From contig CBFFSA010000066.1 of NCBI GenBank assembly GCA_965644495.1, positions 1-37,240 of the forward strand: DNA of 37,240 bases, given 5' to 3'. Below the pieces are notes generated by a model that was not told the DNA's origin, searched no databases, and saw only the letters and a list, made by a program, of their open reading frames with translations. This DNA comes from Perkinsela sp. CCAP 1560/9. Lineage: Eukaryota > Protista > Euglenozoa: Kinetoplastea. The position numbers and the translations under genes are program-made. This document shows, piece by piece, positions 1,802 through 37,240 of the stretch (positions are counted from its first letter, which is position 1; every line of letters begins with the position of its first letter).

Positions 1802-2679
1802 ATTCTTTCTTTCTTTCTTTCTTTTCTTTCTTTTTTTTTTGGGGGGGGGAGGGGTGGTGAACCAATATTCTATTGGTGGGTTCTCTCTTTCCTTTTCAGG
1901 TAGTGGGTTTTTTTTGACATTTTCATGTCGTTGGCTGATAGGCTTTTAGGTATTAAAAACCGCCCATATTTTTTAAAACTGACTTGATGGATATCCGGGA
2001 TATTCACAGAAATCCTTCCCGTCAGGGAAATAAAAAAAAGGAAGTTTCTGTTTTTTTTTTTGCTTTTTCTTTCGACAAAAAAGAAAGAAAAGAAAAAAAA
2101 AGAAAAAGAAAAAGAGAGAGTTGTGTTCACTTTTTGGTTTGTTGGTGCACCATGTCGAACCCTGGTCCAACAAGTGGCAAATCTCCCCTCTTTGGAGGCA
2201 CAGCAGGAAACTCATCCGGTACTGGAACACTTTTTACTTCTTCTGATTCTGTCTTTTCAAAAGATGGGAAATCCTCCTTTTTTTAATTTCTTTCTTTTTT
2301 TTGCTTTCTTCCTTTTCTTCCTTTTTCTTGCTTTCTTCCTTTTCTTCCTTCACCTGATGTTGAAAAAACTTTTTGCCACCTTCTTTCTTGTTTCCCTGAT
2401 GATTACTTGGATCAATTCAATCAGATATTTCAGAATTGGGCTTCCCAGAAAGATCATATTCTTGAGAAAGGAGTTGCTTCTTCCTCTTCTTCTTCCCCTT
2501 CTTCTTCCTCTTCTTCTTCCTCTTCTTCTTCCTCTTCTTCTTCCTCTTCTTCTTCCTCTCTTCCTTTCAATTTTGCAGAGGAAGAATCATCCACAAGTTT
2601 ATTCTCTGTCTGCCGAGAAGAAATTGATCCAGAATTTCCCCGACCACGTTCAGTTGATCTTGTTCTTTCTGGAAATGTG

Positions 2680-2880
2680 TTACGTATTTCTTTTGGCTAT
2701 TCTGTTGAGAAGAAGCGATTTTCTCTTCTTTTCTCTGTTCGTGGGCGAATTCGATCAAGAATCCATTCTGCATGTGGATTTTTCAATGAAGAGAATGGAA
2801 CCATTGAACAGGGTCAATGCACATGTGAAGTGGGCCAAGGAAGTCAGTGTTCCCACATCGAAGCAGGTTTTATGGTTTTG
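2680..2880 (+). other. SWIM-type zinc finger domain (CxC...CxH) in frame with the Fanzor A reading frame
   Basis: IEQGQCTCEVGQGSQCSHIEAGFMVL (core 2818-2856), preceded by beta-strand-like FSLLFSVRGRIRSRIHSACGFFNEENG. Confidence 0.75.
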
Positions 2881-4796
2881 GCAGGAATCAAGGCTGGTCT
2901 TCTCCCTTCAATTTGGAGTAACTCTCGTTCTGGCTTCTCTCTCCCCAAAAATACTGAAGTGATTCCGTACCTCCAATCAACAGTTGCCTCCATTGCTCGA
3001 TTGGGTAAAAGACGGTTTTTGACGTGTAACGACACCCTCGTAAAAAAACAATTTGCAAAAAAGGTTTATGGGAACATGATAAAGAACCCCTGAAAGGATT
3101 TGTGAACGAAAATCTCCACTTCAGGTCATTCTCTTTTTTTTAAAAAAAGAAACACAACCACCCTTCCCCCCTCCTTCCTTCCCCCTCCTTCCTTCCCCCT
3201 CCTTCCCCCCTTCCTCCCTTTCCTAATAAAAAATTCAAATTTTGCTTTGAAGTTGAAAATTTTTATTCACTAAAAACAAACAGTAAAATCTCTTCTGCTC
3301 AACCAAAACAATCTGGAGAGAGAAAGGAGTGGGACAAGGGTCTTCAAGCAATGTGCTACGAAAAAGAACAGGAAGAAAAAAAAAGAGATTGGAAGGAGAG
3401 AGACAGATTCACTCATGTTGGGGTCGATCCAGGGAGAAGATGTGTAATTTCAGCTGTGATTTATCCAGTGCGAAATGGGGAAAATCTCCCAGATCTGTCA
3501 CGCAAAACAAGTTCTCCACGACTTCGTGATGCGTCCTCTTCTGGAGGGGAGGAGGGGAGAAAATTGGTCTCGAAGAACAATCATCAACGGTTTTTTTTTC
3601 TCTCAATTTTCTCTTCCTCTTCTTTCTGTTCTTTTTCTCTTTTTTTCTATCCTTATTTTTCTATTTTTTTTCTTTCAAAGTCACCTCTTACTATGTTCTT
3701 TTTTTCTCTCTCTCTCCCCCTTTCCCTCACACACACTTTTCTCATTTCTCATTTCTCATATCTCTCTCTTCTCTTGTACAGGATAAAAATTTTGCACTCT
3801 TATGGAAAGAGCGGAGACTGTCCCTCTTGGAAAGGGGGTTGTTTGGAGAACAAGATGATGATGTGGCAGCAAAAGTTGTTTGCCACATTGATCTCAAAGG
3901 GAGCGAGAGAGAGTTTGTGGTTGCGATGAACCCAGGCAAGAAGGGAGGAGAACCGGAGGAGACGAGCACCACCGTTGGAGAAAAGGCATTGTCTTCTCGC
4001 ACCAGTCCGGAGCAATATGGAACAGACGGACCAAAGATGATGTTCGAATATTGAAAGGAATATCGCTGTTGGAGAAAGCAGCAGTGGGAAGAAGAGGGGA
4101 AGAAAAAGTGGTCAAAACAAGAGAGAAGAGATCGGAAAAAGAAGGTTCAAGAGGACCATTTCTTTGAAACCTATGTTTTGACGAAAGGTCGATACCGTTC
4201 TCTCCTTAAGTTGGATGTGAAGAAGAAGGGAGAGCTGTCATGGAAGCGAAAGAGAAAAAAGAAACAGAGTCAAGGAAGTGATCAGAAGAAGAGATTGAGT
4301 CGAAATTTTTCGCAAAGAAGAAGAAGGAAAAGAAGAAGGAAAAGAAGAAGAAGAAGGCGATGAAGAAAATCCAAAAAAGGGACAGAAGAAACTCAACACC
4401 GATGGATGGGGAGCCGAGTTTGTGGCTTGCAAAGAAGAGAAGGAACTCAACACCTCGAACTGGGAGTCACTCCTTCGGAAAAAACGATTTTCGAAGAAAC
4501 AAAAAATGCATTCTACGATTGCGAAGGAGATCCGAACAAAAGCACATCACGTTTGGAATCAAGTGAAGAAGAAGGCAATGGAACAGACTACTTCTCTTCC
4601 TCCAGCTGATATGGATGAGTTTCCACCAATCTGTGTGATTTGGGGAGATGGGACGTTCTCTGCAACCAGCAGATCAGGTCCGATTGCCAATGACGGCTTG
4701 AAAGATGACCTTGCTCCATTCTTTGATGAATGTGTTTGGGGGATTGAAACATCATTGAGGTGGAGCTCCACTATCGCAGTCATCACGATATTAAAA

Positions 4797-4828
4797 TCGC
4801 CCTTTGAGGGATATCCCTCAAAGGGCGA
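4797..4828. repeat. Perfect 32-bp palindrome (templated inverted insertion)
   Basis: TCGCCCTTTGAGGGAT/ATCCCTCAAAGGGCGA; the left arm is absent from the aligned position in copy B. Confidence 0.9.
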
Positions 4829-4872
4829 AACGGAATTTTAAGTCTAACTCCAAGGAATCTTCCCTTGCTGCT

Positions 4873-5048
4873 GTTGTGGCCCGGCACTGATATTGCCTGG
4901 ACTCTTCCGATTTATTTCGTGTTAAACGGTTTGTTCTCTTTCCTCTTTGTTTTTTTTGGGAAGTTCTCGCAAGTTCAAATCAAATTTTGATTACGTGGCA
5001 TTGGGCATTGTTTTATTGGATACTAATCTTTTGCAATTTTGTTCGTTT
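4873..5048 (+). ncRNA. Putative omegaRNA scaffold / element right end of Fanzor A
   Basis: Strong nucleotide similarity to the reverse complement of 9271-9438 continues well past the stop codon (GTTGTGGCCCGGCAC...CAAATTTTGATTACGTGGCATTG...TTTTATTGGATACTAATCT.TTGCAATTT...TCGTTT) and then ends abruptly. This matches where Fanzor/TnpB omegaRNAs are known to lie. Confidence 0.7.
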
Positions 5049-8859: not shown

Positions 8860-9270
8860 GTCCCTGCGTTTGGGTTGCTTCGAGAGCAAGGGCACACAGA
8901 TGAAACAGAGGATGATTTTCCAAAAAAAAAAAAAAAAAATTCGTGGAGGCTACATTTAGGGCCCTTTTTAAAAAGAAATTTCATTTAAAACGCAAGGAAA
9001 TAATTTCTTTTTTTTTCGATCGAGGCGAATCGATCAACTTTCTCAAGAAAAGGGGTGAAGTCTTTGAAAAGAGACAGGTCAAATGAAGAAAAAAAGAAAC
9101 TCGTTCGGTCTTATAGCTCGAGCTTCTTCCAGTGCAATCTCTCCTTTTCTCTGAAACTTGGGGAGACATGATTAATGATTTTTCATCTGAGTTGAATTGG
9201 AAGATTCATCCAGACATGCTCTTCAATGTTGATGAAACTCTCCTCCGAATTGCGAAAAATGGTCAACTGG

Positions 9271-9438
9271 AAACGAGCTAAATTGCAACAGATTAGTATC
9301 CAATAAAACAATGCCACGTAATCAAAATTTGGTTTGAACTTGTGGAACTTTCGGAAAGAGGAAAAGAGGAAAGAACAAACATGTTTAACACGAACTAGGT
9401 CGGAAGGTCCCAGAGCAATCTTGGTGCCGGGCCACAAC
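9271..9438 (-). ncRNA. Putative omegaRNA scaffold / element right end of Fanzor B (overlaps the ORF end)
   Basis: Shared with 4873-5048; conservation ends at CTCGTTT (9271), after which the flank CCAGTTGACCATTTTTCG is unique to this copy. Confidence 0.7.
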
Positions 9439-12400
9439 ACTGGGCTGAAAATTTCCTTTCGCCCAGTCGGGGATCTGATGATGGATCCGGTAATGGAGCT
9501 CCACCTCAATAATATTTCTCGCTGCTGCCAGATCCCGACTCCAGGGACGGTGACATTCGCCACAGCGGTAAGCCTTCTGTTAGGGTTTGTGAATATTCAA
9601 AAAAAAAATCTCTGGAAAGAAAAGGGGTGGGGGAGAAGCAAGAGAGCAGTGATACAAAAAACCAAAGATGAAAAAAAAAGAACAATAAAAAAGTCCAAAA
9701 AACAAAAATTGTACAAAGAACAAGGAAAAACTGTGTGATTCCATTGGGTTGTGAACACAAAAGAAGAGGGAAGGAGGGGGGGGGGATGTTAAGAAGAAGA
9801 AAAAAAGAGTTTTCAAAAATAACCTGTCTCGAACAAGGAAGCCACTTGGATTCATTCTTGATGTTACTTTCCTTTGGGGCACCTTTCTTTTTTTTGAGCA
9901 AAGGTGTTTTGCAACATGGTGAGTACTTTGTGGTTCCGTACTCAATCCCCCAAACACACTCATTAAAGAACGGAGCAAGATGATCTTTCAGACCATCATT
10001 GGCAATGGGACCTGATCTGCTTGTAGCAGGGAAGGTACCATCTCCCCATACCAAAAGAATTGGTGGAAGCTCCTTGGTCATCCCAATCTCCTTGTGGTGG
10101 ACTTCTTTTGCTCTTTCCCAAACAATACGAGCTTTTGTAAGGAGTTCATTGGCAATGGTCGAGTACATTTTTTGTTTTTTCGAAAAACGTTTTTTCCGAA
10201 TCAGTGAGTTCCAGTTGCACTTGTTCACATCTTGGGCAGTGCTGCTGAACTCGACCCCCCATGAATCCCTCAGGAATTGTTTGAGTTTTTGTTGTTGTTC
10301 TTCTTCATCTTCTTCATCTTCTTCATCTTCTTCCTCTTCCTCTTTTTCTTCAGCTCCATCTTCTTCTTCTTCTTTTTTCTCTTTTTCTTTTTCTTCTTCT
10401 TCTTCTTTCTCTTTCTCTTTATTCTCGAAAAACTCTTCTTTCTCCCTTTTCTTTTTCTTTTTCTTTTCCTTTTTCTTCCACATCCTCTTTCTTTTTGTTG
10501 GTCTTTTGACTCTTCCTAATGGAGCCCTTCTACATTCCCTCTCTCTCTTTTTCTTCCAAGAATACTCTCTCTTAGCTCCCGCATCCAACTTGAGGAGAGA
10601 ACGGTATCGACCTTTGGTGAGAACGTACGTTTCAAACAAATGGTCCTCCTTCATCTTCATTTTCCGATCTCTTCTCTCTTGTTTGGACCATTTTTTCTTC
10701 CCCTCGTCTTTTCTCCAGCATCGATATTCCTTCCAATACGATGTTACCGTTTCTTCCTGTGTGATATGGGGAAGTGTACTTTCTCCAATGGTAACCACTT
10801 GCGGGTGTCTTTGTCCCTCTTTGTCCAATTGGGTTTACCACCATAAACTGTCTCTCTTTTCCTTTCTCATCAACATGGGAGACAATGGTGGCCTCATCAC
10901 CAAACCATTTGTGCTCCAATAAATCCAATCTCTTTTTTTGCCACAATTGCAACAAATTTTCTTTCTTTTTCTCCTGTACAAGAAGAGAAATAAGAAAAAA
11001 GCAAAGTGAGTGAGAGAGAACGAGAAAGGCAAGTCAAAAGAGAGAAAAGAAAAAGAGAGAAAAAAAAAATAGAAAGAAAAAAAGGAAAATATGATGATGA
11101 GATAAAAAAACCTTTTTCGGTGATTCTTCTCCTCGACCAATTTCCCCCCCTCCCCTCTCTCCAGAAGAGGAGAGTTCTGGGAGATTTTCTCCATTTCGCA
11201 CTAGACAAATCGCAGCCGAAATTACACATCTTCTCCCTGGATCGACCCCAACACAGAGTGAAAACGGGTGGTTCTCTGCTTCGATTTTCTCATTCTCTTC
11301 TTTCTCTTCTTTTTCTTTTTCTTTTTTCTCTTTTTCTTTTTTCTCTTTTTCTTTTTTCTTCTTCCTCTTCTTCCTCTTCTTCCTCTTCTTCCTCTTCTTC
11401 TCCCTCTTCTTCGTCTTCTTTTTCTTTTCTCTCTTGTTCTTCCTCCTGCATCTTGATCCATGCGTTTTGTCGAGCAACGATTTTTTTGATTGTGTCCAAC
11501 GACGTTTTCTCCCTTTGGATCTGCAATGAATCACAAACCCCCCGGAGCTCACTCATCCGCATTCGTTTCAATACTTCAACAGGTACAGCTTTAAAATTGG
11601 AAGGAATTTGGAGTTTGGTAGTTCTCTCAAAATTCGGTCGAAATTGATACCCGTCCGTCGAAAAAGAACAAAAATCGTTTTGTTTCATTAATTTGCCCTG
11701 AAACAGATTGCTCGAAGGTCCTTGGCCCCACTCTTTTCCCTGGTTCGGTGGAGCAGAAGACATTTTCCTGTTTTTGTTTTAGTGGGAGTTGAATAAAATT
11801 TTTCAAGTTGAAGGAAATTGAATTTGAGATCATGTTTTTTTGTTGTTGTTGTTGTGTGTTGTGTTGTTGTATGGTTGTGCCCCCAAGCAAGGGGGAAGAA
11901 GGGGTGGGGTGTTATGAAAAAAAAAATACCGAAGATGTAAATTTTTGTCCACAAATCCTTGCAGGGGTTTGTCTTCGTCCTCCTGGTAAACCCCTTTCGC
12001 AAATTGCAGTTTAACAATTGTATTGTTAAAGGTAATGAACCGCCTATTACCCACTTTACTAATGGGGGCAACTGTTCGACTAGCAATCCCAATTTCGAGA
12101 AGTTTGTCTTGCAGCTGCAAAAAGAATGGAACAATTTTGAGGGCATTTTTCTTGCTGAATGCGTTGTCTCTCTTCAAGGTTGTTTGCTGAAATTTAGGTA
12201 CCAATGGTGCCAACTCTTTGGAAACAAAGTTTTCGACCGCATCCCTTCCGTCTTCACTCTTAAATCCTTGCACAGCAGGAAAAGAACAGTTCTCACCTCC
12301 CAACAATTGACCCACTAAAACGCGAGAACAATAATAAGTCGAATTGTTCTTTTTCTCATCCGAGAAACGATTGGTTATCTTGTGGATGAGAAGCTTTTTG

Positions 12401-14077
12401 CAAAAGCCACGAACTCTTCGGAGACCAACAAGAAAATTCGTTATTTGTTGATTTCGGATTTGATGGGTCCACATAATCAGAATTTTCTTTCCCTTCGCTA
12501 TACCTTCCTCCAATTTCGGAAGTGGAGATTTGGAGTTGAGGGCAATTCGTAGCTGCTCCCGAAAGGAACCATACTTCGTTTCCAATTTATCACTGCAAAG
12601 GATATTGTACAACCGAACGTGACCTCGAATTCCTTGACTGCATTTCAAAGTTTGGTTCTCGAAATCGCCGGAGGTCAGCCAGGCAATACGGAGAAAGAAA
12701 TCCCAAAGAGACTCGAGTGATTCTTTCGCTTCAAGAGGAGAACAACTCTCCCTTTTGTAGCCTTCAAAGTGGACAGCCGAAAGAATTGAGGTGATATAAG
12801 CTATCTCACTCAAACACCGACTCATTGCAGGTACAAAAATCCGAAGGAACGATGTTTGTGGACAAACACTCGAGCAACTTGTTGTTCGTGTGAAAGATTT
12901 GTTCTCGACAACACCATCTTTGGTTTTGGGATCTGAAGATAAAGACAAACGTTGCTCGTCCACCAGTATATCGTCAGCTTTTGATTGAAGGGCTGCCAGT
13001 AGATCTTCTTTCGAAATATCATGGTTCTCCCACGTCAGTTTTCCTTTGTCAATCGCGTTCATCGCCTGCTTAACTGATCGTGACGTATTCAGCTTTCTAT
13101 AACCTTGTATTTTTGCATCCCCCACAACCTTCTGATAAGAAGAACTATTGAAAAAAAAAAGAAATCAATGAATTTGAAAGTTTCCTGAAATAAGAAAAAA
13201 AAAATAAATCGCAAACACACACAAAAAAAAGAGAAATAAAGCGAAAAGTAGAAGAGAGAACTTTGAAAGTGGAGGTTGTGAGGTTGAAACCAATAAAGGA
13301 GCAGGCTTTGTATGATGACTCTTCTGAGACAAAGTTGAAGGAGACTGACCAAATACACCAGCAGAGGAAGAACTGGAGCAGCGTTTTGTGCGAGTTTTCG
13401 AAGCATGTTGCTGAAGGTGGTGTGGATTAACTTGTGGTGTTGGGTGTTGGGTGTCCAACATCAATACACTTGAACGAGGAGGTAATGGTGGCAGTAACGA
13501 CGATGATGTTTGTGGTTCCTTGAGCATCGTCCTAAATTTTTTGCCTTTCGGTTTGTTTTCCAGGCTCAACCGACGATTCTGAGAGGTTGAGTGAGGATCT
13601 TGAGAAGGTTGTGTTTCACAGTGTTGAGCTGATGCTTCAGTAGTAGTGATACCACCTGAAAATAGAAAAAACAAGAAGAGGACAGAGAAGAGAAAAGTGA
13701 GACAAGAGTGTTAATCGGAGGAGAGAACACTGAGAAAAAACCTTGGGAATCCTTTGGTTGTTGTTGACCTCCAGCAGGGCCAGAGAATAAGGGATTGGAG
13801 TTAGTAAACTCCTCATCATCATCATGTTTCGCTCTTTTGGTTGGAGGACGATCAGTTGTTTGTGGTGAATTGAGTGCTGAATGACTGCTGAGTGATTGCT
13901 TTCTACTGCTGGAAAACATTTTTTTTTTTTAATAACAATAAGGGAATAATAATAAGGGAAGCAAAAAAAAAAGATCGAAAAAAGACCTCTCCACCCACTA
14001 CTCCTGTTGCTAGGCGACACTTCCATCTGCATTGGTGATGCTTTTGTCTTTTTCTCTTTTTTCTCCGGAGTCTCCAT
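9385..14077 (-). CDS. Large spliced Fanzor1-like RNA-guided nuclease, copy B (roughly 1,250-1,300 aa; two apparent frameshifts; 5' exons uncertain)
   Basis: FSTDGYQ; RuvC-I VGVDPGRR (Asp 11241-11243); LLVWGDGTFP; RuvC-II WGIEYGTTKYSPCC (Glu 9941-9943). After intron 9577-9823 (GTTATT...CTAACAG) the frame reads KAYRCGECHRPWSRDLAAARNII, giving the CxxC and RuvC-III Asp (9532-9534), with TAA at 9385-9387. Other introns: 10974-11111, 11768-11929. Frameshifts at ~11355 (A-run) and ~10830. Start is ATG 14077 or 13919. Confidence 0.92.
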
Positions 14078-15365
14078 CCAGGACTTTCGCTCTTTAATTA
14101 AAATAATTTGTCAATAAAATAATCTGAATCACTTCAGAAGAAGAAAAAGAAAGAGAAAACCAAATCAAAAAAAAGGAAATCGAGAAACTGATTGAAACTG
14201 AACACAAAACCAAGACGAACAATTGAAGAGAAAAATGACATCTTGTCAAAAACATGTTGACGACAGGTACTCACCGGCACAATTTATCGTCACGTGGAGG
14301 GGTTGGGTGTGACACAGACCACAGAAGGCTCTTTTCTCCGAAGAATATTCACTGAAGAATTAAATAGTGTCGTCTATCTTGCCGCATGGGTGGGTTGAGG
14401 TCATCCCACTCAACACCCAACTTTTTTGTTTTCACGACCATCCTTTCTTCAAACTCTGCAAAAGCCCCAAAAGAGAAAAGAAAAAGCGCGTTTTTTGATT
14501 TTTTTTTTTTTTTCGGTTCGTTTTTCCTCTCTCCAACTCCCCCCCCAAAGCCAAGCCGCAGAAACAAAAAACAAATCATCCCAGAACAAATTGTTGTTTT
14601 TCTTTTTCTGTGAGATGACAATTTTATCAAAAAACAAGAAAGACAGAACAATTGAAAGGATTTTTGTGGTGATGTTTTGGAGTTTTATGAACAAATTAAA
14701 TAGTTCTTTTGATGTTCAAACAACTCTTTTTTCTTCTTTGATATTTTTAAGCTATTTGATCCCTCAAGAATTGAATGTCGCAGAAGATGATCCAATTCTC
14801 ACTGAGAGAGAGAGAGAGAGGGGAGTCAGGGAGTTAGGGAGTCAGGGAGACTTGAGATCCCACCAGACAAGGTTCTTTTTTTTCTTTTTCTTTTCCTCTT
14901 TTTTTTTTTTTTTTTCTTTTTCTCTTTTTTTTTCTTCCTTCCTTTTCTTATGTTTAATCTTCTGTTTATCTTCTGTTTAATCTTTTATTTTAAAACAGAG
15001 ACAAAAGTGTTCCATATCTTATCAGAAAAGAGTGGAAATTGAAAAGGGTCCTTTTCCTTGATTGATCTGCTTTCAATCAGAGGTTTTTTCTTCTTTTCTT
15101 CCTGTTTCTTCCTTATCTTTTCCTCTTTCCCTTTGAAAAGAGAAAAGTTCGAGATGATATCATTTTTTGATTTTTCTCTTTCTTTTCTCTTGCTCTCTTT
15201 TCATTAAAGGGATGAAATATTTTTCTTCTCACTGTGGTTTCTTTACTTTTGATAAATATTTTTGAGTCAGAGGAGATAATGAGAACAAAGAATTTATTAT
15301 TGGTTAAAGCTGCAAAATCCTGCTATTTTCAAGAAAATAATCCCTCAACGAGTGCATGGCAGTTG

Positions 15366-15496
15366 CAGCATTTGAAATCAACCACATCAAATCAATCTCC
15401 CAATCCCTCCCCCAAGAAGAAGAAGAATACCATTCCCAATCCGTCTACATCACAATTATCACCAAACTCCTCATCCAAACAACTTCAATTTTTCCA
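15366..15496 (+). pseudogene. Inverted ~130-bp copy of part of the gene at 16006-17571
   Basis: Near-identical to the reverse complement of 16798-16934 (AFEINHIKSISQSLPQEEEEYHSQSVYITIITKLLIQTTSIFP), followed by stop codons. Confidence 0.85.
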
Positions 15497-16005: not shown

Positions 16006-17571
16006 TCACCAAAAACTTGGAGAAGAAGTGGTTGAGACACAGGTCAAACCATTTTCAGTTGTAATTTTGAAATTGGATTTGAGACAAAACTTAATTGAAG
16101 AGATCAATGATGAAAAAGAAGGATCAAAGGAAGGAAGAGTTTTCAATAAATTGCAAAAACAAGATGGACTTGCAGCAGCTTTCTTATGGACCAAATCATT
16201 TGTCAAAATCAAAGAATGGACAAGAGAGATCGAAAATGATCCACTTTCCAAAATATTGTTGATGAGAGAAGTCACCTCTTCAAAGACAAAGATTCCCAAA
16301 GACTTTGATTTGGTCATATTGATCAGAACGGACATAAGAATTGTTGATTTGGCATTGGGAGAAGCAATTGGATCAATGGCAACCGCATGAGCAACAGCAG
16401 CAAGGCTATTTGAATCTCCTCCAACCAATCTCTTTTCCCATCCTCGCAAGCGAAGTTGACAAGAAGCATCTTGTGAACAAACTCCAACATTAACCATTTG
16501 AGAAAGAAGAGAGATTGAGAGAATCTGACTCAACCTGGGGAAGTATTCTGTGATTATATCTTCAAAGATTGAGAGAGAGGGGGGGTGAGAGGCGGAGAGA
16601 GAGAGGAAGGAAGAGAGGATGGAGTTGAAGGTTTGGTCTGGGGTGGGAGAGAGAGAGAGAGAGAGAAGGATATTGGAGAGAATTGTGGGGTTTGGGTGGA
16701 AGAGAAGGAGAGAGAGGAGAGAGGGTTGTTGGTGTTGGAGTTGGAGTGATGGAGTTGTTGGAACTGTTGGAGTTGATGGAGTAGTTGATGGAGTTGATGG
16801 AAAAATTGAAGTTGTTTGGATGAGGAGTTTGGTGATGATTGTGATGTAGACGGATTGGGAATGGTATTCTTCTTCTTCTTCTTCTTGGGGGAGGGATTGG
16901 GAGATTGACTTGATGTGATTGATTTCAAATGCTGTTAATTTTTCTCGGTTTTCTTTTTCTCTTTCCCCTCTTTCCTCTCTTTTCTCTCTTTTCTCTCTTT
17001 CTTCTTTTTCTCTTTCTTCTCTTTCTTCTTTTTCTCTTTCTTCTCTTTCTCTTTTTTCTTTTTCTCTTTCTTCTGTTTCTCTTCTTTCTTCTCTTTCTCT
17101 TTCTTCTTCTCTTTCTTTTTCTTCTCTTTCTTCTCTTTCTCTTTCTTCTCTTTCTCTTCTTTCTTCTCTTTCTCTTTCTTCTTTTTCTTCTTTTTCTTCT
17201 TTTTCTTCTCTTTCTTCTCTTTCTTCTCTTTCTTCTCTTTCTCCTCTTTCTTCTCTTTCTTCTCTTTCTTCTCTTCTTTCGAGTTTTTCTCTCTCTCTTC
17301 TGTTTCTCTTTGCTCTGTTTCTCTTTGCTTTCCTTTTTTCTTTTTGTCTTTCTTCTCTTTCTTCCCTTTCTTTTCTTTCTTCCTCTCCTTCTTCTCTTTC
17401 TCTTCTTTTTTCCTCGTTTCTTTCTCGTTCTTCTCTTTCCCGTTCTCTTCTTTCTCTTCTATTTTTCTGTTTCCTTGCTCTCTGTTTCTCTTTTCTCTCC
17501 CTTTCTCTCTCTTCGCTTTCGCTCTCTCTTTCCACCCCTTTTATCTCTCCTAAAACCAGACCACAATCCAT
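16006..17571 (-). CDS. Hypothetical protein: E/R/K low-complexity N-terminal part followed by a helical region
   Basis: 521-codon ORF with a protein-like C-terminal 300 aa; start uncertain; no family recognised. Confidence 0.5.
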   Translation of the reverse strand: MDCGLVLGEIKGVERESESEERERERKEKQRARKQKNRRERREREREERERNEEKRREREEGEEERKEREEREERQKEKRKAKRNRAKRNRREREKLERREEREEREERGEREEREEREEREEKEEKEEKEEREREERREREEREREEREEKEREEEREREERRETEEREKEKREREEREKEEREEREKEEREKREKREERGEREKENREKLTAFEINHIKSISQSLPQEEEEEEYHSQSVYITIITKLLIQTTSIFPSTPSTTPSTPTVPTTPSLQLQHQQPSLLSLLLFHPNPTILSNILLSLSLSPTPDQTFNSILSSFLSLSASHPPSLSIFEDIITEYFPRLSQILSISLLSQMVNVGVCSQDASCQLRLRGWEKRLVGGDSNSLAAVAHAVAIDPIASPNAKSTILMSVLINMTKSKSLGIFVFEEVTSLINNILESGSFSISLVHSLILTNDLVHKKAAASPSCFCNLLKTLPSFDPSFSSLISSIKFCLKSNFKITTENGLTCVSTTSSPSFW

Positions 17572-32892: not shown

Positions 32893-35800
32893 ATGCTGCT
32901 GCCATTTATGATAAATATCATTTTTAAAGAAAAAAAATTGATCTTCTCTCCCTCCAGGAAAAAGACAGGACGAAAACAACAAGATGAACAAAACTTCTCA
33001 ACTTTTGCTGGGAACCCCAGTTCTCGTCATTCCTCTTCTTTTTCCTCTTCTTCCTCTTCCTCTCCTTCTCCTTCCCCCTCCCCTTCTCCTTCTCCTTCTC
33101 CTTCTCCTTCTCAGCAGCCTTCTCCTTCTCCTTCTCCTTCTCCTTCTCCTTCTCCTTCTCCTTCTCTCCAATTAAAGTTCAAGTTTACATCTCGGCCGAC
33201 TGTGTCTCGATCATCTCAATCATCCCGACAATCCCATTCTCAACCCCATACTCGATCCCATTCTCCTTCTCCTTCTCCTTCTCCTTCTCCTTCTCCTTCT
33301 CTTTTTACTTCTCTCCAATCCCATTTCAAGTTACCATCTCGGCCGACTGTGTCTCGATCATCTCAATCATCCCAACAAGCCCATTCTCGATCCCTTTCTC
33401 TTTCTCCTTCTCCTTCTCCTTCTCTTTTCTCTTCTCTTCTCTCTTCTCTTCTCTCTTCTCCTTCTCCTTCTCCTTCTCCTTCTCCTTTTCCTTCTCCTTC
33501 TTTTAGAGAATTAGGGACTACAAAATATGAAAAATTAAATTTGCCGTATGTTCGAGAACTCCCCTCCAAAACTTCTTCTCCTTTGCAAACCTTTACATTA
33601 GGAACCAACGATGAGATGGACACCTCAATTTTTCTTGAAGAAGAGAGACCTTCCTCGGCCACATCACTGAATGATCTTTCTTCTTCTTCTCCTTCCCCTT
33701 TTCCTTCTCTTTCTCCTTCTCAGCAGCCTTCTCCTTCTCAACAACCTTCTCCTCCTCTTCTTATTTCTTCATCTCTTTCTCTTTCTCAGCAGCCTTCTCT
33801 TTCTTCAACTCCTTCTTCATATCCTCAATCATCTCGTTGTTCTTCTCAAACCCTCAGTCCTTCTCATCCTCCTCCTCAGACCCAGAGTCCTCGCCGTTTC
33901 TCTTCTCCTCTTCTTCCCCCTCCTCTTTCTCCTTCTTCTGGTCCTTCTAGAAAAAGAAAAGGAGATCAGCAGACTGGGATCCAAAATGCTTCAATGTATC
34001 AGTATCCCAAAAGAAGATCTATTTCTCAGTTTCTCCCTTCTTCTCCTCATGAGGGTGTTGTCTCCCCTCCAGCAGGCTCCTTGAAGAAGACAGAAGAAGA
34101 GTCCTCCTCCTCTCAAGAGTCCTCTTCCTCTTCAGAGTCCTTGAAGAAGACAGAAGAGTCCTTGAAGAAGACAGAAGAAGAGTCCCTTACAACTCGTAAA
34201 TTCAAGTTGAACCGAATAGTGTACCCGAAAAAGATGCAATGGTTTACCTCATACCTCCAAGATGTTGTTGTGGCAGCGTCTCGATTATCGATTGAAGTCT
34301 CGTATTTTTCAAATGCGTACATTACATATTGTCTCGAGAATCAATATCAACTTCCCTTTGATTCATTTTCAGAAATTGAAATATTCTATAATGAATGTTT
34401 GCATCTTTTTCTGCCGAGTAGACGAAAATTTCCAGAACCACAATATAACTTTACGGCTTCACTTCGAAAGAAGATGACTGAGTTTTATAAGATGGAGTAT
34501 ACTTGTGTGGATGAGGCTTTCTATTCTAAACTGGAAGAGTATTTCCAGCAGAAGCTGAAAGGAATGATTAAGGACGTGAAGCACCAAATTTCAAGGGAAA
34601 TGCTGGTAAACGCCAAAAACCACTTTCAAGAGTCGTCAAAGGGGTTTATCAAACGAGTGATTGCTTTTGATGCCCACAAGTTGTTATGGGAGGATGTTGG
34701 TTTTCAAGGTACAGGAAAAGAGGAGAAAAGAGATAGTTGCCAAAGTGGGAAGGAGAGTGGGGATGATGATGACGAGGATCAAACTGAAGACTTTCTTGGG
34801 GAGGAGGAGAAGGAGAAGGAGAAGGAGAAGGAGAAGGAGGAGGAGGAGGAGGAGGAAGTATCTTCTGTTCATGAGAATTCTGGAAAGAAAAAACTTGTGA
34901 CACAGACAAAGGTGCTTGCAGTTGCGGATCGAGTTGCCACCTATCTTTGGCCTCCCTCGAAAGAGTTCACAGGGGTCAAAAAATCAAAGAGAGAGAGAGA
35001 GAGGACCAAATTGTCGAACAACTTGTTAAGGGGGAGAGGGGTAAATTTCCAGGGCTCTTTAATGAGGTGGTTGAGTACGAAAAGAATTTAGAAAATCTTC
35101 TCAAGTACTATGGCAATCTGATGGACCGGATAAACTGAGAGTCAGAGGGAGAATGAGAAACACAGAGAGCAGTCTCAGCAGCAGCAGCAGCCACAGCAGT
35201 TGACTTTGTTTACGAATGATGACTACTGGCGATCGATGCCAAAAGTGAAAAAGTGGGCCTTTCTCCCAATTCGGTCTTACCAGATCCATCATCTTCACAT
35301 TGACACACCATTCCTTGTGACAATCTACCAAAGGGCGCACCTACAAATGTCCTGTTCTAAACCAAAGCGTATGTTAAAACGTAACCACCACCACCACACG
35401 GATGTTGATCTGCTTTCTGTCTGGAAAAAATGCTTAAATATCGAAAGCATTCCTCTCGAAAAGCCAAAAGAAAGATTTGCCTTCTTCATCAAGACTGATG
35501 GTGTTCAGTGTTCTGCAGGAATTGTTCAGCCACGGGAAATTTGCTCTCCTCCTTCTCCTCCTCTTTCTTCTTCCCCTCCTCTTTCTTCTTCCCCTGTTAA
35601 GCCTCCGAGAAAGAAGAAGAAAGAACAGTCACCAACAAAGAAGAGAAATCAAAATCTGAAGAAATTGAGATATTTTCTCCCAAAAGATTATGATTTGGTT
35701 GGCTCATCAAAAGATGTGATTATGAAACTCTCCCATGAACTTCAGACGATCTCCTCCTCCTCTTCCTCCTCCTTCTTGAAATTTGACAAGCGTGCGAATC

Positions 35801-37240
35801 AAAATGAATGCTCTAAACTCGTGGCAAAATTGATGGAGGATTTTGACAAGACTTCCCCTTCTTCCCCTTCTCCTCGGCCTTCTTCTTCTTCTTCTTCTCG
35901 TTCTCGTTCTCGTTCTCGTTCTCGTTCTGGTTCTCATTCTCGTTCTGGTTCTCATTCTCGTTCTGGTTCTAATCCATCCTCTTCATCACAACGTTCCTCA
36001 TCCATTAAACTCTCCAAATTGAAACGAGGTGTCTTTTTGGAAGAACAAATTGAAAAAGATGATGGCATCGACCTTAATTCAATCATTGGGGTGGACCCTG
36101 GCCACAAAGCCTTCTTAACCTCTGTGGTTGGAGTGGGTACAGAGAATCAGAAGTTTTTTGAACTCACACGTGGGGAGTATCTTGGTAAATCAAAGATTTC
36201 TTCTGCTCGAGCGAAGCGAACTTGTTGGAGAGAAACTGTACCACCTGATCAGAAGGAAGCTTTGGACAAACTTGCACAAATCCAGGTCCGAGGTGAGACG
36301 AAATGGTCCTCCCTGAAACCAATGATGGGAACCCGTGTTGAGATCTATGCAAAAGTTCTCTCGTATTATCACACAACACGGTTCGCGAACCAGAGATTTC
36401 GGGTTTGGCGTTTCAAGAACAAGGTGGTGGATAACTTTTTCTCCTTGGTGAACAAGTATGCAAAATCGATTGTGGTGTCGCAACAACATGGTGGTGGAAA
36501 ACAACGGTTTATCCCAACTGTCGCTTTTGGGAACGCAAATTTTCCCAGTTTTCGGTCTTCAGATGGAGTCAAAGCGCCAATTCTCACGTTGCGAAAAAGA
36601 TGGAGTAACACAGCCCGTGTTGTACTTATTGATGAGTACAAAACATCTCAACTCCATTCATCACCCACTTGTCATCACGCAAAGCTCCAGGGTTTGACAA
36701 AACGGCAAATCGAGGATCTTCACCTTCCAACAAAGAAACGAAAATCTCGCCACCCACCATCAAAGATGCCCTCCGAAACAACTCAACAACATGCTCCTGA
36801 GGAAAAAAGGACTTGGAGATGGACAAAGAGGAGAAAGAAAAAGAGAGAGAAAGATAAAAAGAAAAAGAAAAAAAAAAAGAAGGGAAAAGAAGAAAAAGAA
36901 GAAAAAGAAGTGGAAGAGGAAGAGGAAGAGGAAGAGGAAGAAGAAGAAAAAGAAGAAAGCAAAAAGAAGAAAGAACGAAGAGAGAAACAAGAAGAGAGAG
37001 AGAGAAAGAAAAAAAGAAACAAAGAAAAGAGAGAAAGGAAGAAAAAGACGAGAAAAGAGCAAGTAAAGAAGAAGGTTGAGGAGGTGTTTGAGGCAGTGAA
37101 AAGGAATCGTCGTCCACCGGAATCTTGGATCCATAAGATAACGGAGTTGCAGCAGCATCAAACTTCTATGTCACTGCACAAGGACGATGAACAACAAACA
37201 CAACACGCTCCATCACCATCAACCAGCTTGCTCACCAAAC
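32893..37240 (+). CDS. Very large Fanzor1-like nuclease, copy C (>1,400 codons, runs off the window end; two apparent frameshifts; start uncertain)
   Basis: N-lobe TTRKFKLNRIV...LQDVVVAASRLSIEVSYFSNAYI. An open frame from 35134 to the window end, not in the ORF track, reads KWAFLPIRSYQIHHLHID, FFIKTDGVQCS, RuvC-I IIGVDPG (Asp 36094-36096), ELTRGEY, VAFGNANF, RuvC-II VVLIDEYKTSQ (Glu 36634-36636). Frameshifts at the GA repeat ~34995 and at ~35133. Confidence 0.92.

Follow-up and report, generated by a model that had tools for sequence, protein, structure and literature searches.

Fanzor1 nucleases with determined structures, SpuFz1, GtFz1 and PpFz1 (PDB 8gkh, 9ceu, 9cer, 9cf0), have a RuvC triad in the order D-E-D, with the Glu just before a C4 zinc ribbon, WG-x at the old Glu position and an RD motif, and their loci combine a conserved 3' end with a variable flank. 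Placement of the Glu by rearrangement, with the canonical position replaced, is common to all Fanzors (PMC10530073, PMC13565253). Most Fanzor1 proteins are 600-700 aa long (PMC11423790), and some reach ~800 aa (PMC10711439). RuvC insertions in Fanzor1 (PMC11423790) and Fanzors with introns (PMC10530073) are already known. In this study, we analyzed a locus at positions 9271-14077 (minus strand) of a 37,240-nucleotide stretch, hereafter the window, which is the entire contig CBFFSA010000066.1 (C66) of an assembly (GCA_965644495.1, G000; 21 Mb, 110 contigs) deposited for Perkinsela sp. CCAP 1560/9. The locus, designated copy A, shares with these structures the triad, the placement of the Glu, the WG-x and RD motifs, the zinc ribbon, and the conserved 3' end with a variable flank. 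We consider, with a probability of about 0.78, that it is a copy of a recently mobile DNA element that is non-autonomous and encodes a Fanzor1, and for which a homing mechanism can be proposed. The gene is transcribed and spliced, its family has the triad, the zinc ribbon and a Fanzor1-like fold, and the element occurs at multiple sites with a fixed 3' end. In the literature searched, which was limited in scope, we found no description of this family, no report of Fanzors in Paramoeba, the host of Perkinsela, and no case of a spliceosomal intron within the guide region of a Fanzor; the protein of copy A is longer than any Fanzor described there.

The structure of the gene was determined by aligning the assembled contigs of four sequencing runs to positions 8950-14800. 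Runs X1 and X4 were DNA-like (no GT..AG coding joints), and X2 and X5, which come from different studies, were RNA-like. Seven coding exons sum to 3,865 nt and give a protein of ~1,283 aa, allowing for breaks, in agreement with the ~1,250-1,300 aa proposed in the initial annotation. A 5' untranslated region (UTR) intron (14092-14160, GT..AG; X2 joint with 8 letters between) precedes exon 1 (13987-14077). Exon 2 (13742-13908) encodes an S/P/T/Q-rich N-terminal extension with a basic patch resembling a nuclear localization signal, which exon 3 (13262-13655) continues. Exon 4 (11930-13144) aligns with the family at 22-31% identity and contains, from ~12900, the presumed REC/WED lobe. Exon 5 (11112-11767) holds the TDG motif, an E/K tract and the RuvC-I Asp; exon 6 (9824-10973) holds an insert in RuvC, a second E/K tract, the bridge helix, WGD, the catalytic Glu and the first Cys pair of the zinc ribbon; and exon 7 (9385-9576) adds CGEC, the RuvC-III Asp and the stop codon (9385-9387). 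Joints in X2 covered all six coding introns (13909-13986, 13656-13741, 13145-13261, 11768-11929, 10974-11111 and 9577-9823). The last of these splits the zinc ribbon, and the initial annotation had noted that without its removal RuvC-III would never be joined. Its GT..AG joint was present in both RNA-like runs and in neither DNA-like run, and the MMETSP protein P0003 was continuous across the junction. An intron lies at a similar place in relatives of ~40% protein identity, indicating long residence in the host group.

The motifs read in the initial annotation, GVDPG, WGIEYGT, TDG and CGEC...RDLAAARNI in the final exon, were all located on the minus strand where it had placed them. The WED TDG motif lies at 11650-11658. 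Residues were counted on a joined model with X at the breaks, in which the triad is formed in order by D799 of GVDPG (codon 11241-11243), E1182 of GIEY (9941-9943) and D1236 of RDLAAARNI (9532-9534), the final Asp being brought in by the confirmed intron. The Glu lies 34 residues after WGD and 8 residues before the zinc-ribbon CC (9911-9916), which is the rearranged-Glu arrangement, and CC is followed by CGEC (9553-9564) and RD. W-G, Glu, Thr and Cys-Cys were invariant in the family alignment A1. These results indicate that GIEY is not a divergent RuvC-II, as had been suggested, and that its Glu is the standard rearranged Fanzor glutamate. The PF07282 match on the last exon (E 0.0067) was below the cut-off, and relatives P0008, P0010 and P0024 carry this domain.

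We investigated the assignment with single exons as queries, and the natural proteins P0002, P0003 and P0016 stood in for the joined form. A full-library search recovered approximately ten relatives with 39-47% identity from ENA, JGI and MMETSP; a pattern search of JGI contigs found none. Single-sequence PDB searches gave no match. A family profile against PDB ranked GtFz1 first (E 6e-4), followed by PpFz1 (E 2.7e-3). The structure model of P0016 (pLDDT 74.5) was compared by Foldseek, and SpuFz1 and PpFz1 filled the top six rows, with weak E values of 1.7e-3 to 1.2e-2, while Fanzor2 appeared at rank 40. All matches of this model with Z>=8 were RuvC domains of Cas12, TnpB or Fanzor. The presumed REC/WED lobe contains TDG and a helical region that aligned across the family. 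No recombinase-like open reading frame (ORF) was found near copy A, and the recombinase, compactness and viral association that mark Fanzor2/IS607 elements were not seen. The Fanzor identity, for which the initial annotation had suggested profile and structure searches, is thus borne out with family members as queries, and assignment to Fanzor1 rather than to Fanzor2 or TnpB is well supported.

Copy A differs from the characterized Fanzor1 proteins mainly in size (~1,283 aa, compared with mostly 600-700 and up to ~800), in an N-terminal extension of ~300 aa and two long E/K tracts, and in having six coding introns plus one in its 3' block, with no terminal inverted repeat (TIR) or target-site duplication (TSD) found. 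The first motif conserved in the family is preceded by ~303 aa, and another ~205 residues belong to charged or low-complexity tracts, leaving a core of ~775 aa. The distance from RuvC-I to the conserved strand that follows is 155 aa, compared with 29-127 in relatives, and that from the catalytic Asp to the Glu is 383 aa, compared with 167-284. The RuvC-I-to-TT distance is 385 aa, outside the spacing D-X(125,275)-[TS][TS] of Bao and Jurka, which is a descriptive range and not a functional requirement; the excess consists of the insert and a low-complexity tract. A precedent is the FRI domain of PpFz1 (PMC11423790), by which ~100 aa are inserted into the RuvC part of this large Fanzor1, whereas the insert of copy A is ~155 aa long, follows RuvC-I, is ~40% charged or low-complexity and varies in length within the family; no similarity to FRI was seen, no comparison aimed at it having been made. 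Similar tracts fill the neighboring host genes, which makes the giant size look like host-style expansion; those of the sister copy L009 are longer still. We take the ~500 extra residues to be low-complexity expansions in the style of the host, plus an N-terminus that is probably disordered, surrounding a Fanzor1 core of normal to large size. The unusual length and the long insert between RuvC-I and RuvC-II noted in the initial annotation are real, but the extra sequence is mostly low-complexity or probably disordered rather than a demonstrated new domain. Together with many introns, these ~500 residues hide Fanzor1 genes from ORF-based surveys, and Pfam and single-sequence PDB searches overlooked copy A. 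The full-length protein is unattractive as an editing tool, although a new target-adjacent motif (TAM) could be gained from the core of ~775 aa.

Next to copy A, we compared copy B, a diverged and 5'-truncated relative on the same contig (2979-5048, plus strand) that has lost the zinc ribbon and RuvC-III by deletion, and the sister copies L008 and L009 of ENA assembly ERZ24900291, which differ from copy A by 1.1% and 1.5%. A SWIM-like zinc-finger ORF (PF04434, E 0.089; 2152-5048, plus strand) runs in frame into the truncated WED region of copy B. All four copies, and the read contigs, end at 9270/9271 and then diverge. L008 and L009 lie at different sites with different flanks and have the same 3' end. 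The flank (9251-9270, minus strand) differs in every copy and is the predicted guide. The 5' side is variable: copy A matches L009 at 98.5% identity from the exact 3' end to 14598 (9270-14598, minus strand), a 5' limit that may be a truncation, and L008 and copy B share another upstream stretch with L009. In X1, contig depth of the element was 4-5 times that of its flanks, which fits several copies, contig depth being a poor counter. The contigs of the DNA runs differed from the window at ~1% of sites.

Further observations concern the ends. Three family copies are preceded by a pyrimidine-rich stretch of 84 bp with 95% identity (2272-2355; L009:5124-5205), which is possibly a left end or a small repeat. 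The 116 bp downstream of the end of L008 (L008:5946-6062) match an element-free site at 90% (C71:24106-24222), and read contigs hint at a ~140-bp paralogue of the flank of copy A (9134-9270); both may reflect homing or 3' carry-over. A TAM of AACA derived from the paralogous C71 site was rejected because the position of the left end is uncertain. A 15-nt exact match of the predicted guide of copy A in a tandem array on contig C20 (165434-177135, period 2,922 bp) was attributed to chance (roughly 0.05-0.1). The neighborhood of L009 also includes a PIF1 gene and an endonuclease gene, which are not part of the shared element.

Copy A contains three frameshifts that are private to it. At ~13994, in exon 1, it has one base fewer than L009 and the X2 and X4 contigs; the second lies at ~11357 in the E/K tract of exon 5; and the third is an addition of 13 bases (10803-10815) in the RuvC insert. 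The reading frame of L009 is undisturbed at each of these sites, and L008 lacks the 13-base insertion. Both frameshifts reported earlier near ~10830 and ~11355 are therefore real, and the one at ~13994 had been missed.

The 3' end of the element consists of a conserved block of ~170 nt (9271-9439, minus strand) that overlaps the end of the ORF, has a sharp boundary and is 81% identical between copies A and B, even though dS at synonymous sites is 0.6-1.0 between them. By its position and conservation, this block is a candidate omegaRNA scaffold and right end. A 103-nt spliceosomal intron lies within it, in the 3'UTR (9278-9380, minus strand), with a GT donor 4 nt past the stop codon and a branch-like TACTAAT before the AG; its removal leaves 7 nt of the element. 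Splicing was observed in assembled contigs of one run, X2. One X2 joint runs on for 22 nt into the flank of copy A itself, a second contig has eight exon bases to the divergence point, and a deep contig stops exactly at the donor. In X5, an unspliced contig extends to 9373. The intron is 81% identical between copies A and B, whereas two ordinary shared introns are 54% and 58% identical, indicating constraint beyond splicing. Some complementary segments are invariant and could let the exonic block pair with the regions of the branch and the acceptor, although invariant pairs prove nothing; such pairing could set folding against splicing. A pseudoknot between the bases flanking the intron was rejected, as its four core pairs showed no covariation and Fanzor1 lacks that pseudoknot (PMC13565253). 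Related Fanzor1 loci from a second host (ERZ25071330) have in common a conserved 3' motif with a terminal hairpin and sharp ends (L018:11655-11790, L021:9825-9956, L019:11258-11403 and L022:9098-9260), and these blocks are better omegaRNA candidates for covariation work.

Several results weigh against a mobile element encoding a Fanzor1. No transposase, TIR or TSD was found, the search for a TSD having covered all four copies. The fold was assessed on a relative of ~37-40% identity and not on the copy A protein, and the model of the REC exon (pLDDT 34) had no match in PDB or Atlas, leaving the REC/WED fold unconfirmed. None of the copies seen is fully intact: L009 carries two private single-base insertions, and L008 has an internal deletion as well as further indels of its own. 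The ratio of nonsynonymous to synonymous substitution rates (dN/dS) between copies A and L009 was ~1, as in neutral decay. Damaged copies and a ratio of ~1 would also fit a family that is a dead or dying relic, copied and transcribed with no active nuclease and disabled by its low-complexity expansions, and this is favored further by at least one break or deletion in every copy examined, by the absence of RuvC-III from copy B and by a frameshift in copy C. However, the breaks are private to single copies, and majority DNA contigs were gapless at the 12508 insertion of L009. The copies are just 1-1.5% apart, the catalytic residues are kept, and at the deeper split between copies A and B, dN/dS was 0.16-0.30 in the nuclease motifs, indicating purifying selection. 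This low ratio, together with that of ~1 between copies A and L009, suggests long-term selection on the enzyme and neutral decay of single insertions. We therefore regard a relic as unlikely; copy A is broken, and the family as a whole is probably not. It is hardly credible that the locus is a domesticated host gene whose long extensions serve a new purpose, for instance binding that is guided by RNA but does not lead to cutting. Seven exons, polyadenylated-type transcripts and large extra regions might suggest this, but the many near-identical copies at unrelated sites, frequent truncations and frameshifts, and intact catalytic residues do not, nor does the RuvC insert, with a dN/dS of 0.5 and a length of 29-155 aa across the family.

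The role of the 3' block was weighed in the same way. Its folding was no better than that of shuffles (z +1.09 and -0.08), there was no covariation, and no Rfam match was found. No small RNA was seen either, in contigs that do not reveal the ends of small RNAs. The case for an omegaRNA thus rests on position and conservation. The omegaRNA-like element proposed in the initial annotation stands as a conserved block at the element end, the RNA fold did not find support, and the internal intron had been overlooked. The lack of thermodynamic or covariation support would agree with a block that is a DNA right-end signal for a transposase, with a cryptic intron that is spliced incidentally and a guide scaffold that is smaller or elsewhere. 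Splicing in a single run and a diverged locus sharing just the last 40 nt point the same way. We nevertheless find this decidedly unlikely, since right end and omegaRNA coincide in characterized Fanzors (PMC10432273), conservation spans ~170 nt and overlaps the stop codon, and the L018/L021 and L019/L022 blocks are also conserved, with hairpins and sharp ends. Another explanation is that the spliced product is the real guide, with ~60-65 nt of the upstream block, 7 nt of the element end and the flank forming a compact scaffold of ~70 nt. The spliced joints do include the element end and the flank of copy A, the exonic part is also conserved (80% between copies A and B), and such a scaffold would resemble those of SpuFz1 or PpFz1, Fanzor1 omegaRNAs of 75-90 nt being known (PMC11423790). 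This appears quite improbable, because the intron is conserved like the exonic part and unlike an ordinary intron, copy B has kept the block but lost the AG acceptor, and the spliced form folded no better than shuffles (z +1.35). Most likely, the 3' intron lies within the guide scaffold.

On the reading of a mobile Fanzor1 element, and by comparison with characterized Fanzor1 proteins, the protein of an intact copy would bind RNA of the element 3' end with ~15 nt of flank, and this ribonucleoprotein would cut matching TAM-adjacent DNA, for example at vacated or empty sites. Repair from an occupied copy would then maintain the element, as proposed for OMEGA systems (PMC13565253). Because of its three frameshifts, copy A probably donates guide RNA and no protein; SpuFz1 ghost loci are a precedent for broken copies donating guides (PMC10432273). 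How guide RNA is produced from a polymerase II transcript in eukaryotes has been described as undetermined (PMC10690162). Hypothetically, transcripts spliced at the 3' intron would act as mRNA only. It is tentatively conceivable, although somewhat unlikely, that in this amoebozoan Fanzor1 lineage host splicing of an intron inside the omegaRNA scaffold decides between mRNA and guide RNA. Because its splicing takes out a large part of the candidate scaffold, the intron offers a direct handle on guide-RNA formation and, if this idea is true, would be a spliceosome-based eukaryotic counterpart of the conflict between intron and guide in IStrons.

In IStrons, which combine a group I intron with TnpB (PMC10690162), a 3' splice site at the right end likewise potentially competes with guide-RNA formation. 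The locus differs in that a spliceosomal 103-nt 3'UTR intron takes part of the block, 7 nt stay joined to the guide, and the element is not spliced out of a host gene; competition would be by analogy. The Chlamydomonas elements CRe-1, CRe-2 and CRe-3, associated with Helitron2 (PMC3627910, PMC10530073), are also non-autonomous and encode intron-containing Fanzor1, with 5' truncations, internal deletions and intact 3' ends; a constant 3' end combined with loss of 5' sequence by truncation or deletion has been described for them (PMC3627910). In contrast, the copy A element showed no identifiable Helitron ends, Rep/helicase or TSD.

The window is rich in introns and has a GC content of ~41%. Its other genes were assigned by motif reading as alpha-kinase-like, phosphatase-like and vWA-like. 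Perkinsela has no cis-introns, while introns are abundant in its host Paramoeba, whose GC content is 43% (PMC5601477). C66 is probably a host-amoeba contig sitting in the endosymbiont assembly, which would account for family matches within G000 being confined to it. There was no sign of a viral origin of the stretch, and no family relatives were found in viral contigs.

Other features were also observed. A third Fanzor1-like gene, unrelated and apparently intronless, lies at 32893-37240 (plus strand); it contains long S/P and E/K tracts and one frameshift near 35090, and it reaches past the contig end. Just upstream of the element, contig depth rose ~100-fold at 14634-14800 in both DNA runs, which marks this segment as a host repeat present in many copies; it matched nothing else in G000. 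A 93% inverted duplication of a piece of neighboring coding sequence was present at 15366-15496 and 16798-16934. A second PF07282-positive gene lies close to a family member (L022:12119-12601, minus strand). Weak PF07282 matches on G000 contigs C1, C3, C8, C10, C16 and C29 (L026-L033), several apparently repeated, may represent further TnpB/Fanzor elements within the part of the assembly that is endosymbiont-like.

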